From Lepidodermella squamata (taxonomy: Eukaryota; Animalia; Gastrotricha), in assembly GCA_047495785.1 (NCBI GenBank), contig JBLDXI010000011.1, positions 1,054,001 through 1,118,000 of the forward strand: a stretch of 64,000 nucleotides of DNA, written 5' to 3'. This document shows positions 10,552 through 18,490 of the stretch, one piece after another. The notes beneath the pieces are model-generated. The model worked only from the letters and a program-made list of their open reading frames with translations, did no database searches and had not been told where the DNA came from. Numbering within the stretch: position 1 is the first letter of the stretch; every line of letters begins with the position of its first letter. The translations under genes and the position numbers were made by a program.

Positions 10552-10618
10552 TGTAGTGCGGTGCAAACGTCACCTGTTTGTCGCGTGCCGCCTCGCGCCT
10601 CGCCCTTCAGTTGTAAAC
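10552..10618 (+). mobile_element. 5' part of a short LTR, split by the 10619-18481 transposon
   Basis: Begins TGTAG. Joined across the GTTGTAAAC duplication to 18491-18592 it forms a ~170-bp TGTAG...CTACA LTR. Confidence 0.5.
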
Positions 10619-11777
10619 GCACATTTACGGATCCGCGGTGGTTTCCTCCGGCCAGTAAAACGATGTGAAAGGCAATTTTTCCATAACAATTATTTGCTCG
10701 CACACTATTGGCCGGTTCAAAAATTAACGCGGTAACCGCACTAATGCCACTGTGAAACAAAACAACCGTTGACTTTGCAGATTTGTCACAGATTTGTGGC
10801 TAATAGTCAAGACCGATGCAAATATTAAGAAACACATTCTCACAAACTGTAAAAAAATGACTTTTAGCGAAAATTATCCCACTGAGAAATTCGTTCGACA
10901 CTAAGAAATTTGTAAATTTCGAACGAATTTCTCAAATTTAACAATCAGTTATTGGAGAAAATAAACTAAGGCTTCGATTTGCAAGCAATTTGAACTATTT
11001 ATATTCAAAAAATATCACGCCTTGGCATAATTCGAAATTATTATCAATTTTCTGCTTTTAAATCGATGGTCACAAATTTAGTTATAATTTTCCCTTGGAT
11101 GTTGGAAAGAATACTATCCTATTTTTTTAAATTTCCAGAGCTCAATTTTATCGCCCATTTTTGTTGAAATAACCGTAATGCCCATTCATAATTTTGTGTA
11201 GTAGTGACCTAATTAATTATTATGCGGAGTGTTTGCGTGGTGCAAAACAAAAAATAGTGAGAGCAAATTTTATTGCTATGTGATATTGCTACGGCAGAAA
11301 AAAAACGAATAAAGCCACGAAAGCAGCGCGAATGAACGTAAACTGCCATACTGTAATGACAGTAATGACAACCTCACCCTTGAATATCGAAAAAAATTAA
11401 TCTCGGTTTTATTAAACATTTTTTTTTATATTCCAAGTCCGCCTGAAAAAACCGGGTTCAGGATTGGAAATAGTGATAACAAGCAGCCTTTTGATTTCAT
11501 TATCGAGTGCAGCTGAATTTTGCGTCCAGTTTTCAGCGATCCCAATCGATAATTATTGTTGAATGTTTTGGCGATCGGGTTGGGTGATTTTTTCTAATTT
11601 TCAGCAAGGAGTCAAAGGCGTCAATAATGTTGAAATTTGAAATTAGGGTAAAATTCACAACCTCTGCTCATTTTTTCAATTATTGATTTCACTGGATTTG
11701 GGAATTTTTTAGGAAAAATGTTTCAATCATCCCGTTCGTGGCGCGGAAGAACCAGCACTTTGGGCAAAAAAACTCGT

Positions 11778-12042
11778 GTACACAAGAGTACAGTATATTT
11801 ATTCTGTACAAACTGGTACAGTTTTGATGGCCGTAAATGTCAGTACAGCTCATTCGACTGTAGATTGAGTACAGTTGACCAGGCTGTATATTAGATGTAC
11901 AGCGTTTCATTCCTGTATCATGGCGTACAGCTCATTGAGCTGTACGCCCAAGTACAGTCGAATGCAACGTACATGCTGAGTACAGGAGTGACAGCCGTAA
12001 TGACTGTGTACGGTTCGTCTAAACCGTACACGAGAGTACAGG
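11778..12042. repeat. Left subterminal GTAC-rich array of the transposon
   Basis: Dense GTACAG/CTGTAC/GTAC motifs at irregular spacing, mirroring 17805-18192. Confidence 0.65.
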
Positions 12043-12583
12043 AGATTCATTTTTATAACGTAGTCGATGGAAGTTACGGCCCGCAAACCCACTCACAATT
12101 AGATTGACGATTTTGGTGAAAGAGTGAGAATCGGACGAATGTGCAGGTAATTAATTATTCGACGCGACGATTGCGACGCGACGATAGACGCGACGATAGA
12201 CGCGACTTCCATGTTTCGTTGCTCACATAAGAAACTTGACAAATGATTTCAACCTCTACTCCACCTTCTCAGACAAATGAAAATTGGGCGTTGAGCAATA
12301 ACGATTATAAGTAAGTTGTTTCCTTTTCAAACTCCTGTGAATAAAAAGTAGGACCGAAGTCACTTGTCACGTCTAATATTCGATAAATAAGTCATCGTTT
12401 TTGATGGTAATAAAGCGCATTTTTAGCAGAAAGAGCAACTCGTGTCAAAATAAGGAATATAATCACACTTCATATTTCCTTCATGGTGACGATATATCCT
12501 ATTTTTTCTTCACAGCCCGTTGCCGATATTACCATTGCAAACGATTGTTCACATTTTTCGTGATTTTAGGTAAATTTTCTGAA

Positions 12584-13617
12584 ATGACTGACTCAATAGT
12601 AAAAGTGACTATCGGCGAGTCAAAGTGGGCACGTTGCGTTAGAATGAATAGTTCCGCGGAGAACCCTTTAGTATTTTTAAAAACGAAAATCTACCCCGTC
12701 TTCCGCAACATCTTTAAAGCTGACGACTATGGCCTTTTTTGGCATGATGGTGATCATTTCGTCATCATTGATGACGATGATGACCTCCTGCTAGCGTTTC
12801 ACTTGAATCCAGAGCGCCTTCATATATCAGTCTTTTTTGGACGCTATCTCGAGGACCTAATGACGCTACAGCCATCTTTGTCGCAAAAGGTCGAGGACTT
12901 GACGAGAATGATTTCAGGTATTTGTGAATATTTTTATCGAATATATCCTAGATGGAAGTTCCTCTGATTTTCAAATTTTATGCTCAAAAGGAGAAAGTTT
13001 TCAGGACAGATCTTCCTAGTTTAGGTTAAATGTAAGCTGAATTGCTGGAAAAATCGCAAATTTATCCCAGTTTTTCGCAGCGCTAGGGTTCAGATTGTTT
13101 ATGCATATTTCTTTAATTAAATGTCTCTAATTTTGCATAAGAATTACAAACCGAACCTAAGCCGTCGCCGGCCCAGACGCCTTTCAATGCGCCACCTCTG
13201 AGTTTAGGTGCGTCACAGTCTCACCTACCCATTGTCACCGGTACCAGTGGCTCCAGAGCGGCACCGCAGACAGTTGTTGATCGGACTGGGTCACTTTACG
13301 ACAAAGTCAAGGAAGTCCCGCTCCTAAAGGCGGTTGCTAGGACAATGGATGAGCGCCGGGACCTTGGGGAGCCAGGCTACGTCAGGTCAACAACTGAGCA
13401 CTTCCACCAAATACTCAAGGAGATGGGTACTTGCTTCGAAGAGTCCTTTGGGGGACGTACCGTCACTAATGTGATGAGCAAAATGAACCAATACAGGGTA
13501 AGGCAGTCCTAGTCTTGCTGAAGGCGTGGTTGCGAGTTTTTGTGAGGTTTTAAAATGGAATGAGGTGGAAATTACTTTAAATCTTCTTTTATATAACCAA
13601 TTTCTTAGAGGTTTTAA
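12584..13617 (+). CDS. Transposon-borne PB1-domain + short coiled-coil + Myb/SANT-like protein (exons 12584-12917, 13142-13497, 13609-13617)
   Basis: Exon 1 has IVKVT (PB1 beta-1 Lys) and YGLFWHDGDHFVIIDDDDDLLLAF (OPCA-like acidic motif). Exon 2 is open in the expected phase and ends YDKVKEVPLLK...FHQILKEM...GRTVTNVMSKMNQYR (Myb/SANT-like helices). The exon-2 acceptor (AAG) is weak. Confidence 0.55.
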
Positions 13618-14283
13618 AATATCGAGATGGCCGCCATGGAACTTGATGAAACTACTGCTGAGTCTGAGTTGCGCCTAACGCGAAGCGAATGGCTTGAGTT
13701 GGAAAAATCTAAGAAAAAAACATCTAGAAGCTTGAGAGTCAAAGGCCAACGACGAGTTATGGGTAAATTTGTTGGGAAAAAACCTCATCGAATCGGTTTT
13801 CGCCGAAAGTGCCGCTTGTGCGATAAAACATTTTTCGATTCATCCGGTTTGAAAAAACATTTACAATTGTATTGCAAAAAAACAGGCAGCTTAGCTCTTA
13901 CTGAGAAGGAAATTGAAGAATTGATTTATTGGTCAAAAAAAATTATTTTGTCAAACAAAATGAGGCACCCAAGAGGCGATCTAGTATGAAAAATTAGTCG
14001 ATGAGAACTAAAAATGATGCATATTGAACTTGATTATTGTTTATCTTTAGGACTTTATTTTGTCTACCTTAATAATGTCGAGCAATTCTCATTCTGATGT
14101 TAGCGCGACTTGCTCGTCGTGCTTGGGCTCTGCTGTTGGCAATGTATTGAGCAGAATGCTGGACAACCTCTCAGTTGTTTCCGCAACGTCAACGCCTTCT
14201 CAAATGTCGAATATTTCAGAAATTTCGAATGCTGACTATTTGCCTTCATTCATTTGGCCGAAAACTGAAGAAAGTGACGCGAC

Positions 14284-15340
14284 CAGTGTTCCGAGTGCGG
14301 GGGGTACGGGGGTGGCGCGTACCCCCTTGGAGAAGACCCAAAAAGTGGAAGGGGTGCCGCGTACCCCCTAGCAGATTTGTAAAAGGAAATTTTTATGAAA
14401 AAATCTGGCTTCACCATGGGTCAAAATTTGAAATTTTTCATTCTAAATGACAATATTATCAGCTTTCCAAGCGTTCTACGTATAATAATTGGTGTGGCTT
14501 TCGATGACTAAGCGTACAGCGAGAATCCCAAACAACTTGGAGTACCCCAATAAATGTCCGATAATGAGCGTAAAAAGTTAAAAACCAAAATTTGAACGCT
14601 GCGGAATTTTCAAAAACAAATTAGATATTCTGAATCAGCATGAAAAGTTAGGCTAGAGTGCAAATTTGCGCGCGATAACATTGAAAATTGAGGAAGAAAT
14701 GAGACGTTGAAAAAGCGCGCTTATATGTGCGTGACTAGCACGCGCACGTCAACTGCGAGCGCGAGCGAGCGCTTAATGCGTGTACAACCTCGCGCGCGTT
14801 TGCGTGGAAGCTGATTTCGTAGTGCGCGCGCTCACTAAAATGCAAATTTACTTTCCACTATTTCTCCCTCAATTTTGAATGTAATCGCGCGCAAATTTGC
14901 ACCCTAGCCTAACTTTTCATGCTGATTCAGAATATCTAATTTGTTTTTGAAAATTCCGCAGCGTTCAAATTTTGATTTTTAACTTTTTACGTGCCACATT
15001 TTTTACACGATATCTAATGCAAATTTGACGTAATTTCAACAGTTTGTTAGCGATTTATATCAATTTAAACGCAAACTTGGGAAAAATTGCTTTGAAAATC
15101 TAAAATTTTCTTGCTCGCTTCGCTCGCAAACAAGGAGGATGACCTGTGTAATTCCACGTTTCAGTTCAACTAAACACCTGTAAAATTTTTGCACGTTGCC
15201 GATTTCTAATGAAAAATGCGAACTATCTAAATAGTAAGTATAGATGTTAGATGGAAATGCGAGCGAACGAAGTTCGCGAGCGAAATTTTTTTATCACTTT
15301 TTTGCGTACCCCCTAGCACTCAGACCTAGTCGGATCACTG
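14284..15340. mobile_element. hAT-type non-autonomous element (MITE), 1057 bp
   Basis: TIRs CAGTGTTCCG / CGGATCACTG and a perfect 8-bp TSD GACGCGAC (14276-14283, 15341-15348). Removing it restores the transposase frame (ESDAT-LDSSSD). Confidence 0.9.
14569..14991. mobile_element. Palindromic MITE-like segment nested in the hAT MITE
   Basis: About 130-bp near-perfect inverted arms (14569-14700 / 14860-14991) around a CGCG-rich spacer. Confidence 0.7.
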
Positions 15341-17854
15341 GACGCGACCCTAGACTCTTCCTCCGATATAGCTAGAAACTTGAAACCCGGTGAGCCAGAT
15401 CGAAACGTCCTGTTTCCACCGCTTCGGCCATTTTTATTTTATCATTGCAAGTGCCCAAATCGTTGTAAAGACTATTTTCCTCAGCAAAATGTCCGCCGGC
15501 TATATGACGCTTTTCAAAACAGCAATTTAGATGACCGGCGCAGCTTCATAATTCGCCAAGTAATACCTCGACGTGGTCCTTCGAAACACCACACTTTTCA
15601 ATTCGATGGCGCGTTTTCGAACAAGGCTTCGGCCGGCAACATTCGCGTGTGTTCGAAGTTTTTCCACAGCGCCCTTGGCCTTTCCCCGCGCAACTTCGTC
15701 GAGTGGACTTTAAAGAATAAAATTGGCGATCTAGGTTTCGCCAAGCCGGATGAACGAGGTTGTCAGCCCAATCCTAACGCAATCTCAAACGAACAGTTTG
15801 ATCACTGCTGCAGGTAATTCCTTCCGGTCGATTTATGAAAACATTTATTTGCAAATTATTACAGATTCATTGATAGCTATGAGCGTGCACCCGGTCATTA
15901 TGTCCGAAAAAATTCCAGAAAAGTTTATATCCAAGGAGACATAACGCAGCGAGAAATGTTCGATGCATATTTGAGGCACTTTTCAACTCTCTCAGCGGGC
16001 CTATACCCACTTGGCTTCTCTTCCTTCAAACGGGTTTTACGCGAAGCCTACCCCGAACTGTCTTTGAAATTAACCAAGAAAGACAAGTGTTGCAAATGCA
16101 GAAAATTTAGATTGCGGCTACGCGAAAACAGAGTTGACGAGAGGCGCAAATCTATCTTCCAGGTGCATTTATACATGAAGAACGCTGCTAGGCGAGCTTG
16201 CAAGGCCGATACGAAAATGGCCCAAGAGAAATCGGAGGTTGTCGTGATACAGCTAGACTATGAAAAAGCATTGTTAAGCCCGGCTATTTCCGATGCAAAC
16301 TATCACTACAGGAAAATGAAAACTTGGAATTGCGGTATTTTTGCGATGTTTATATATATTTTAAATATATATTATATCTGTTGCAGTGATTTATGAAATG
16401 GTGTCTAAGAATGCGTTTTGCTTCATGTCCGATGACATTGACCTTGAACACCCTGACGGTAGCTCCGCTGGATCTGCGTTATATGCCTATATAACCAAGT
16501 ATTTACCGGTTCACCATCCGAACTGCCGTACGCTGATCATATATAGTGACAACGGCACAGGGAACCACAGCAGCTACTTCGCAAACGCCATCATGTTCGC
16601 ATTGGAAAACACAACGTCACAGCTCCAATCGGTCCATCACAAATTTTTCCAAGCTAATCATACAATGATGGTCGTTGACCATTGTCATTCGTAATTTATG
16701 AATAGAAAATTGGCCGTTTTTCAACTTTTCAATTTTGTCAGATTGATTGAGCGAAGAGGCAGCCGGCATTCCATCAATTTCCCTACAGACTGGCGAGAAG
16801 TCGCCCGAATTTGTCGCCCTGAACAACCATTTTTCATTCACGATTTGTCTTGGGATGAGCTCCTGGATTTCCACGGCGAGCCAAGCTTCACATCAAAGCT
16901 TCGGAAGCCAAAAAACTGGAGAATGAGCAACAACCTCAACTGTGACCTTTTCGGGATTGGAACCAAGCCTAGCACAAAAAGCGATTATTTACCATGGTCG
17001 GAAGGCGTTTGGTTCAGATATCGAAAGGGGACGAAAGCTGTCTTTGTTCGAGACGGCTACGAAGCGAAATGGCCTTGGAAGATGTACAGTCTATCGAAAA
17101 ATTCGCTCAAAAAAGTACCAGTAGGAATTCCCCCGAAACTGAGAAAGTCCCCTCTTCCACTCCCTTACCCTTTGATGGCTGACATGCTTGAGATGCTGAA
17201 GAACGAAATTATACCGAGGTCATATACCGAGAAGATTCTTGATCTTCCTTATCAGCCGTGGAATGGCAAACAATCCGACAAGCGTGCAATATTTGAGAGC
17301 TTCAATGTTAGAAAAAATTCAGTGCCTTATGATTCAGATTTTGATGATTGAATAAAAGATACCTAATTTCTATATTTGTATGATATAACATGAGTAGGAA
17401 TCTATATTTGAGTGAAGCACGAAATATAGATCGAGTAAAGCGAATGAAACGAGTGAAATCGAGGCGGAGCGAGCCGGTAGGCGAGCGGAGACGAGATTTC
17501 ACGAGGTGAATTAGTCGAACCTAATCACTAATCAGTCAATCAAATTACGTAATAGATAAAACCGCCGAATAACCACTATACTTTGCGTTCACTTGCTGAC
17601 GAAATATCGCGAAAAATGGGAATTAAAATTTGAGTAAACATTTGGATCGAAAATAATTGGTGGCATCCGCTAAGCTATAAGTCTAAGGTCTTCGCATCTG
17701 CAACTGCAGGGATCTGAAGCTGAACTGAAGGGATCTGAAGCTGAAAACTGCTATCCCGATCAAGATAAATAAACTTTACCAAAGAATACGGCACAGACCA
17801 TATACCGTACTTGAAGTGCGACATCGTCTTCTGTATTTCGCATGTACACTATCT

Positions 17855-18006
17855 TCTCTCCTGTACTTGAAGTACAGTATCTCTCCTGTACTTGAAGTAC
17901 AGTATCTCTCCTGTACTTGAAGTACAGTATCTCTCCTGTACTTGAAGTACAGTATCTCTCCTGTACTTGAAGTACAGTATCTCTCCTGTACTTGAAGTAC
18001 AGTATT
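17855..18006. repeat. 25-bp minisatellite, about 6 copies (CTGTACTTGAAGTACAGTATCTCTC)
   Basis: Perfect tandem copies at 17861, 17886, 17911, 17936, 17961 and 17986 (last partial). Each contains the palindrome CTGTAC-n5-GTACAG. Confidence 0.95.
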
Positions 18007-18490
18007 TGAGCCGTATGCATGAGTACTGCCCGATCACTACAGTACTAAGCAGTACGGTCAGGCGTGCCGTACTGGGGTGTACAGCTAATTTCAGCTGTAC
18101 AGCGAGTACAGCGCGCCGACTGTACTTTATTTTACAGTCGGTTTGAGCAGTACTGCTGTTTTACAGAGCCATGGACTGTACATTTCGGTACTGCTGAACA
18201 AAAAAAATAAGCAAAGTGCTGGTTCTTCCGCGACACGAACGATCCGAAGAAATTCACTTTCAGCAGCCTCTGAAAATGAGTCTCTTATATTTGCGCCGGT
18301 CTGCATTTTAGCCATGAATTAGCCAAGTCGACGGTTATTTTGTTTCGCAGCGGCATGAATGCGACTCCCTCGTTTATTTCTGAATCGACCAATAGCGTGC
18401 GAGCAAATAATTGTTAGAGAAAACTAGCCTTTCACAGTGGTTTAGTTGCCGGAGGAAACCACCGCGGATCCGTAAATGTGCGTTGTAAAC

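Follow-up and report, generated by a model that had tools for sequence, protein, structure and literature searches.

A 64,000-nucleotide stretch of the genome of the gastrotrich Lepidodermella squamata (GenBank assembly GCA_047495785.1, contig JBLDXI010000011.1, forward-strand positions 1,054,001 to 1,118,000; hereafter the window, numbered from its first letter) was analysed for the transposon lying between positions 10619 and 18481. On balance, the locus is probably a defective copy of a recently active cut-and-paste transposon, most likely of Sola1 type, that carries three cistrons (ORF1 with a PB1-like domain, ORF2 with a zinc finger, and a transposase with three candidate catalytic aspartates, DDD) and lies nested in an outer element. 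An original prediction, made from the letters of the window, had taken 10619-18481 for one DNA transposon in which long terminal inverted repeats (TIRs) enclose a Sola1-like transposase and an upstream module made of a PB1 and a Myb/SANT-like domain.

Element boundaries

The window was compared with six other loci in the 121-Mb genome that carry the transposase and/or the upstream module (five full copies and the truncated L060, which shares the left part). Similarity to the other copies (98.1-99.9%) starts at window position 11733 and stops at 18241-18246, with nothing beyond in common. These ends are 30-nt TIRs flanked in the window by the 4-bp target site duplication (TSD) ATCC; the five other full copies have TIRs identical to those of the window copy and TSDs of ATAC, AGAT, ATAT, ATAT and AAAT. 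The transposase-bearing element is 11733-18241, about 5.45 kb when intact, and was nested in the outer element by a later insertion.

The long inverted repeats exist (10616-10783 and 18317-18484; 168 nt, 84% complementary) but bound that separate outer element; they were ruled out as ends of the transposase element, since its copies share 11733-18241 only and the long TIRs belong to an independent element. Elsewhere in the genome at least seven distinct copies of the outer type were read, 1.29-1.47 kb in length, all starting GCACATTTACGG and all with a 9-bp TSD; its TIR (165-168 nt) gave 40 matches among those listed. Because of the 165-168-nt TIRs and 9-bp target duplications, 10619-18481 is assigned to an older, non-autonomous Mutator-like element, about 1.36 kb without its insert, which is host to the nested transposase element. 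The features of the locus are as follows.

10619-11732, no strand assigned: outer element, left part, unrelated to and outside the transposase element; TIR 10619-10783, 9-bp TSD GTTGTAAAC at 10610-10618
11733-11762, plus strand: Sola-like element, left TIR, 30 nt, starting CGTTCGTGGCGCGGAAGAAC, 97% complementary to the right TIR; TSD ATCC at 11729-11732
11776-12053, plus strand: left subterminal array of nine (A)GTACAG motifs with a spacing of about 27.5 bp, a YGTA(C) half-motif standing before each
12584-12917, plus strand: ORF1 exon A, PB1-like beta-grasp, 111 codons and 1 base; donor CAG followed by GT at 12918
13142-13512, plus strand: ORF1 exon B, disordered Pro/Ser-rich linker, then a predicted beta-hairpin and four-helix domain (13264-13497), stop TAG at 13510-13512
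13627-13989, plus strand: ORF2, basic protein with a single C-x2-C-x12-H-x4-C zinc finger, its tail frameshifted in the window copy
14075-14283, plus strand: transposase exon 1, first piece, from ATG 14075, cut by a nested insertion
14284-15340, no strand assigned: nested insertion of about 1.06 kb, ends CAGTG...CACTG, TSD of 8 bp (GACGCGAC) or 9 bp (GACGCGAC[C])
15349-15813, plus strand: transposase exon 1, second piece, Cys-rich N-terminal region; donor at 15814, with the same 51-nt-class intron in subfamily 2 (see below)
15865-16334, plus strand: transposase exon 2, ending with the first candidate catalytic Asp (VVVIQLDYEK)
16387-16690, plus strand: transposase exon 3, holding two further candidate catalytic Asp, the second in YSDNG and the third in VVDHCHS; 76% identical between subfamilies
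16742-17351, plus strand: transposase exon 4, stop at 17349-17351; six identical copies and diverged relatives in the genome
17830-18181, plus strand: right subterminal motif region, a 25-bp tandem repeat with GTACAG (17830-18029) and scattered copies to 18181
18212-18241, minus strand: Sola-like element, right TIR, 30 nt; TSD ATCC at 18242-18245
18242-18481, no strand assigned: outer element, right part; TIR 18317-18481, TSD GTTGTAAAC at 18482-18490

Copies, subfamilies and selection

The genome holds six near-identical full copies of the transposase element (that of the window and five others) and internally deleted copies. Genome-wide, 151 Sola-like TIR termini were counted, against 0 for a control pattern. 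[quoted passage not shown] The family looks recently active because of these near-identical full copies, deletion derivatives and TIR termini, MITEs included. Examples of the MITEs are found at C3:1277754-1277918, C6:109670-109834 and C21:2543865-2544024.

The window copy and its near-identical copies constitute subfamily 1, and three loci (L061, L062 and L063) constitute a sister subfamily, subfamily 2, with a related TIR (CGTTCACGTCGCGGAAGAAC). Related TIRs in subfamily 2 and at L064 are flanked by the TSDs ATAT, ATTT and ACCT. A further relative of exon B lies on C15. L061 and L062 are colinear with the window copy (exon A, exon B, ORF2 and four transposase exons, in that order), and intron positions and phases are the same in both subfamilies; at the DNA level, the subfamilies align over the transposase core only. 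Amino acid identity between subfamilies was 53% for exon A, 54% for exon B, 48% for ORF2, and 50, 67, 76 and 61% for transposase exons 1 to 4.

Proportions of nonsynonymous and synonymous differences between subfamilies (pN and pS) were calculated by the Nei-Gojobori method. For exon A, exon B and ORF2, pN was 0.30, 0.32 and 0.38, respectively, at a pS of 0.78-0.89, which is saturated; for the transposase exons pN was 0.17-0.38, and over all exons pS was 0.78-1.03. The ratio pN/pS was 0.17-0.45 across the exons of the family and about 0.38 for the PB1-like module, with pS saturated. Because pN lies far below saturated pS across colinear exons, all three cistrons are judged, from these sequence comparisons, to be under purifying selection since the subfamilies split. 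The upstream module was in this way borne out as a real, selected part of the transposon, kept colinear in a sister subfamily (about 50% amino acid identity) whose intron has an unchanged position and phase, and the search for other copies that had been proposed found it in two subfamilies.

One subfamily 2 copy (L061, 2243-7309) has mismatched flanks (left AATA, right CAGT/AGTT) and one altered terminal base, whereas the other copies have clean 4-bp TSDs. This copy may be a recombinant of two insertions, or the product of a rearrangement near the contig start.

Cistron layout

The family has three separate cistrons on the same strand (ORF1, ORF2 and the transposase), of which ORF2, at 13627-13989, had been overlooked in the original prediction. 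Three cistrons are recognised, and not one, because stops and ATGs are conserved at their borders and splice pairs that would fuse them are not. In both subfamilies the ORF1 stop lies 2-5 codons past a conserved ...R, ORF2 starts with Met-Ala just past an in-frame stop and ends with a conserved tail and a stop, and the transposase ATG follows 50-77 nt further on. No in-phase donor and acceptor pair that would fuse cistrons is common to both subfamilies. A single fusion ORF was rejected: the junctions are not conserved, and the intact ORF2-to-transposase join meets a stop.

Every cistron ATG lies 13-26 nt 3' of a pyrimidine tract and AG in both subfamilies; in the window these potential acceptors are at 12569, 13608 and 14050. 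Because each start is thus placed behind a potential acceptor, the three cistrons would come from one pre-mRNA, which either spliced-leader trans-splicing or alternative splicing would resolve.

PB1-like and helical domains of ORF1

The three peptides on which the original prediction was built are encoded on the plus strand, in exons 12584-12917 and 13142-13497/13512. Exon A carries the VKVT and FWHDGDHFVIIDDDDDLLLAF stretches and ends MIS; it is joined through a phase-1 intron to exon B, whose peptide ends MNQYR (13497), and the ORF1 product is 234 aa long. Searches and folds were run exon by exon, not on spliced proteins.

Exon A was modelled with AlphaFold2 from an alignment of five family sequences, and the model has the topology bbabbab. 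When the model was compared with the PDB by Foldseek, PB1 domains took all of the first 11 rows and the majority of the first 20 (best E 4e-4; NBR1, Cdc24p, PKC-zeta/p62, AtNBR1, MAP2K5, MEKK2/3, Par6 and p40phox). In an alignment by VIA-align against 48,161 PDB representatives, ranks 1-7 were all PB1 (Z 8.3-7.1), with other ubiquitin-like folds (DIX, UBX and TBCE-UBL) 1-2 Z units below. The beta-1 Lys (K7, in IVKVT) is kept in both subfamilies in copies with a complete N-terminus. An acidic, OPCA-like cluster over beta-3, beta-4 and alpha-2 (WHDGDH..IIDDDDDL in one subfamily, WSDEEH..IIEDEDDL in the other) is acidic in all aligned copies. Because PB1 ranks first in both of the independent structure searches, and because the Lys and the acidic cluster have been kept, a PB1-like fold with both interaction surfaces is supported for the N-terminal domain of ORF1, in keeping with the PB1 domain that had been predicted, albeit from a low-confidence model. 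Head-to-tail oligomerisation of this domain is inferred.

The C-terminal 78 residues of exon B were modelled with confidence (mean predicted local distance difference test score, pLDDT, 87.8) as a beta-hairpin and four helices. Foldseek returned nothing under E = 1 for this domain and Pfam nothing at E ≤ 10. Structural alignment gave a best Z of 4.9, for a mix of LOTUS, TetR helix-turn-helix and winged-helix folds, with the plant GT-1 trihelix at rank 32 (Z 3.8); Atlas TM-scores did not exceed 0.5. The domain is at most helix-turn-helix-like, as modelled, and the Myb/SANT module that had been expected here was not recovered, despite the confident model.

Predicted zinc-finger protein ORF2

When intact (L056), ORF2 encodes 123 aa with an isoelectric point (pI) of about 10. 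The C-x2-C-x12-H-x4-C finger is conserved in both subfamilies, and the C-terminal tail is conserved in subfamily 2. Pfam matches were below threshold for both zf-C2H2 (E 9e-4, 20 bits against a cut-off of 25.2) and zf-BED (E 0.1). ORF2 is predicted to be a C2HC/BED-like one-finger protein and the strongly basic partner of the set.

Transposase gene, splicing and superfamily

In intact copies the transposase has 685 codons in four exons. The in-frame stop after VVDHCHS falls inside a 51-nt GT..AG intron (16691-16741). In an RNA-like public run (X1), one contig joins exactly across 16691-16741 and a loose contig end supports the 16334-to-16387 splice; neither splice was seen in a DNA-like run (X2). 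Because contigs of X1 show both intron removals, the element is transcribed and spliced in at least one sample, and the spliced, multi-exon transposase that had been placed downstream of the module holds. Across L056 2375-6110, many low-depth contigs of X1 link opposite strands about 100-150 nt apart along the whole element; these joins may have arisen as artefacts when short RNA contigs were assembled, or may reflect sense and antisense transcripts.

Three Asp (QLDYEK, YSDNG and VVDHCHS) are invariant between subfamilies and stand in DDD order, and are candidate catalytic residues. Profile searches of the transposase against the PDB gave no matches to RNase H-like cores. Among all ORFs and exons searched in Pfam at E ≤ 10, no transposase family was matched, the matches being weak zinc-finger, DUF7506 (E 0.04) and RFX-like ones. 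The RFX-like stretch lies in exon 2 (15865-16334, about residues 30-75 of the stretch searched; Pfam RFX_DNA_binding E 0.017, PDB RFX5 E 0.003) and may be the transposase's own DNA-binding domain.

A word search with exon 4 returned two unnamed fragments, both on contigs of about 1 kb; a profile search with exon 3 and an Atlas search with exon 4 returned none. In a protein-language-model search, exon 3 was adjacent to eukaryotic DUF7869 clusters (score 0.94). A DUF7869 hidden Markov model (HMM) run over the genome gave no match to the Sola-like element itself, and a literature search found no paper mentioning DUF7869. The transposon family and DUF7869 proteins may be remotely related. Elsewhere in the genome (G000:C34:1209958-1210554), a distant relative of exon 4 (44% identity) lies directly 3' of a weak DUF7869 match (E 0.86).

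TSDs were read for nine copies (ATCC, ATAC, AGAT, ATAT, ATAT, AAAT, ATAT, ATTT and ACCT). In this small sample, A stands first in 9/9, T last in 6/9, and AWWT is matched in 5/9. The Sola superfamily was described by Bao et al. (2009), as cited in PMC3845634 and PMC4455052. A 4-bp TSD with AWWT preference has been called a Sola1 hallmark (PMC3845634), and Sola has no Pfam model (PMC5751038). Because the TSDs are 4 bp long and start with A, and Pfam gives no match, as reported for Sola, Sola1 membership is considered quite probable, as judged by published descriptions of Sola only. The Sola1-like transposase of the original prediction is accordingly plausible with respect to its 4-bp TSDs.

Subterminal arrays and proposed end pairing

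Subterminal DNA (11733-12100 and 17800-18241, 810 bp in all) holds GTACAG or its complement 29 times, a density of 35.8/kb against 0.38/kb in the rest of the window and an enrichment of about 100-fold; the repeated subterminal motifs that had been reported were thus confirmed. Successive motifs of the left array are spaced by 28, 27, 26, 28, 28, 27, 28 and 56 bp. Motifs of AGTACTG type occupy the matching subterminal zones of subfamily 2.

In the mechanism proposed, the zinc-finger protein ORF2 and/or the helical domain of ORF1 would bind the subterminal arrays, head-to-tail PB1 contacts would polymerise the bound proteins, and the polymer would pair or condense both ends for the transposase, in the manner of TnpA (En/Spm) or the Harbinger Myb-like protein. 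Interference with host PB1 signalling or autophagy, which the original prediction had also suggested, found no support in these results. The most specific form of this proposal is a trans-spliced mini-operon transposon in which a PB1 filament, formed on the arrays of about 27.5-bp period and tethered by the one-finger protein, pairs the ends for a Sola-type DDD transposase. It is offered as a speculative scheme and is rather improbable as a whole. If true, it would give the first transpososome based on a PB1 polymer and, among eukaryotic cut-and-paste elements, the first accessory system encoded in an operon.

Weighing of alternative explanations

Several results count against the explanation preferred here, that of a defective, probably Sola1-type element with three cistrons. 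The exon A model is of low confidence (pLDDT 59.6). In a PDB profile search the sole match of exon A was the PB1 domain of AtNBR1, over the acidic motif and not significant (E 0.41). The Pfam PB1 model (PF00564) reached a best E of 0.09, under the gathering threshold, in two subfamily 2 members, and had no match (E ≤ 10) on the window exon A protein. A HMMER search of exon A over 1.84 billion representatives gave low-complexity Asp-rich matches only and no true relatives, and its word search and PDB phmmer search gave no matches. The exon B C-terminal domain is mildly basic (pI 9.0), has nearly balanced charges and matches no specific DNA-binding family. The evidence from RNA extends neither to the ORF1 intron nor to 5' ends nor to a spliced leader on any cistron. 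MITEs of 165 bp with the same TIRs have multiplied though too short for full arrays, so the arrays are not strictly needed for mobilisation. Finally, the Sola1 assignment is a probable one, made from published descriptions. An account in which the accessory proteins are selected but do not assemble a transpososome is held to be unlikely, while keeping some force. On this account the beta-grasp would act as an adaptor of a generic ubiquitin-like or PB1-like kind (for nuclear import, control of transposition dosage, recruiting or blocking of host factors, or evasion of silencing), and only the zinc-finger protein, if either, would touch DNA. The spread of MITEs without full arrays, the character of the ORF1 helical domain and the 1-2 Z units that separate DIX, UBX and TBCE-UBL from PB1 all suit such an adaptor; it is harder to square with the rank of PB1 above other beta-grasp families in two independent searches, with the conservation of PB1-specific Lys and acidic cluster between subfamilies, and with periodic arrays beside both TIRs, conserved in both subfamilies, which call for a sequence-specific multimeric binder.

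The enzyme might also not be Sola1 at all; it would then come from a different superfamily, or from one that is undescribed and akin to the eukaryotic DUF7869 proteins, the 4-bp TSD being coincidental. To this minority view, which deserves about as much weight as the adaptor account, speak the comparison with Sola by description only, the position of exon 3 beside DUF7869 clusters whose transposon class was found in no paper, the match to AWWT in just 5/9 TSDs, and a TIR sequence unlike the published Sola1 MITE TIR. Against it, no Pfam model of any other superfamily matches, as expected for Sola (PMC5751038), the 4-bp TSDs are not TTAA and tend towards the A-start, T-end bias reported as a Sola1 hallmark (PMC3845634), three Asp are invariant in DDD order, and the DUF7869 HMM has no match on the element. 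That ORF1, ORF2 and the transposase are exons of one PB1/zinc-finger/DDD fusion, like the plant PB1-carrying Mutator-like elements (PB1-MULEs), is very unlikely. All lie on one strand with gaps of 50-160 nt, a donor at 13984 and an acceptor at 14050 are in phase in the window copy alone, and in subfamily 1 exon B could be joined in frame to an AG that immediately precedes the start of ORF2; but in subfamily 2 exon B ends without a GT and the ORF2 ATG lacks a preceding AG, the ORF2-to-transposase splice of intact copies meets a stop, the in-phase join of the window copy is a by-product of its 1-nt deletion, and conserved stops and ATGs mark all three cistron borders. A captured host gene fragment, decaying neutrally, is scarcely credible as the source of the PB1-like module. 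Relatives were not found outside this genome, which is also compatible with lineage-specific capture; the module is nevertheless intact and colinear in two subfamilies that can no longer be aligned there as DNA, has a pN/pS of about 0.38 at saturated pS, and is 100% identical in seven copies, and a neutrally decaying one-copy capture was ruled out on these grounds.

Comparison with known systems

Accessory proteins are known in Harbinger, En/Spm and MuDR elements. Harbinger elements make 3-bp TWA target duplications, and in models of En/Spm (CACTA) the repeated subterminal motifs are bound by a non-catalytic protein, which joins the ends. Like PIF/Harbinger, the gastrotrich family keeps a separate small non-catalytic protein beside its transposase; unlike it, the family has no DDE_Tnp_4 or Plant_tran Pfam match, a 4-bp TSD, two partners and no recovered Myb/SANT fold. 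With En/Spm TnpA/TnpD it would share the production of several proteins from one transcription unit, by analogy, whereas En/Spm belongs to an unrelated superfamily with a 3-bp TSD, obtains its products by alternative splicing of one gene and has no PB1. The modelled ORF1 domain resembles type-AB PB1 domains (p62/SQSTM1, plant NBR1 and ARF/Aux-IAA) in beta-grasp topology, beta-1 Lys and acidic cluster, and differs from them in that its sequence similarity is under every curated threshold.

The family agrees with Sola1 in its cut-and-paste habit, TIRs, 4-bp TSDs (A-initial here, and AWWT in 5/9), a candidate DDD transposase without a Pfam model, and short MITEs. Described Sola1 elements carry a single transposase ORF (630 aa in one example; PMC3845634), whereas the gastrotrich family adds two conserved cistrons and long periodic subterminal arrays. 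PB1 domains occur in plant Mutator-like elements and in the derived MUSTANG-B genes, within a DNA transposon lineage and kept in several clades (PMC4948706). There, PB1 is tied to a Mutator-type transposase gene and is recognisable from sequence; here it would be part of a separate small animal protein and is recognised by fold and motif only. The undescribed architecture that had been proposed therefore has a plant precedent as far as PB1 in transposons is concerned (PMC4948706), while an animal Sola-like element appears new in having two accessory cistrons that are conserved, one of which starts with a PB1-like domain.

In the descriptions consulted, Sola elements carry just one transposase gene, and hardly any biochemical work on them is known. 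With two additional proteins kept by selection, and with near-identical copies, deletion derivatives and MITEs, the family is a tractable system for the role of accessory proteins and arrays with a DDD transposase. The precedent for PB1 would be widened from plant Mutator-like elements to an animal and another superfamily, which suggests that transposons have recruited an oligomerisation module more than once. If expression of the three cistrons does depend on spliced-leader trans-splicing, a mobile element would have fitted its gene layout to the operon machinery of its host.

Defects and later insertions

The window copy is defective and now non-autonomous because an insertion splits transposase exon 1 and the ORF2 tail is frameshifted, neither of which had been noticed in the earlier description; its ORF1 is intact. 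In clean copies 14284 passes directly to 15341/15349, giving a single open frame of 230 codons for exon 1. The A-run at 13935-13942 has 8 A in the window copy and 9 elsewhere, and the last 18 or so ORF2 codons are frameshifted as a result. The insertion (14284-15340) is present only in the window copy, being missing from the five full copies and from the truncated L060, and has an internal inverted repeat of 132 nt at 14569-14991 (96%). It looks hAT-like and non-autonomous. A sequence weakly similar to it was found at L066.

Two outer-type elements (L009, C121; L011, C4) have the same 9-bp TSD (AACCGGAAT) and the same flanks in opposite orientation, as would be expected if a segment had been duplicated or a haplotype left uncollapsed. 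In all six full copies the transposase stop is closely followed on its 3' side by a repeat of about 148 bp (about 17368-17515), which also occurs alone at dozens of genome sites with 92-97% identity. It may be a MITE or a short interspersed nuclear element (SINE) inserted into the founder copy; in run X2 it has a word depth about 20-fold above the remainder of the element, and in run X1, too, depth is greatest there.

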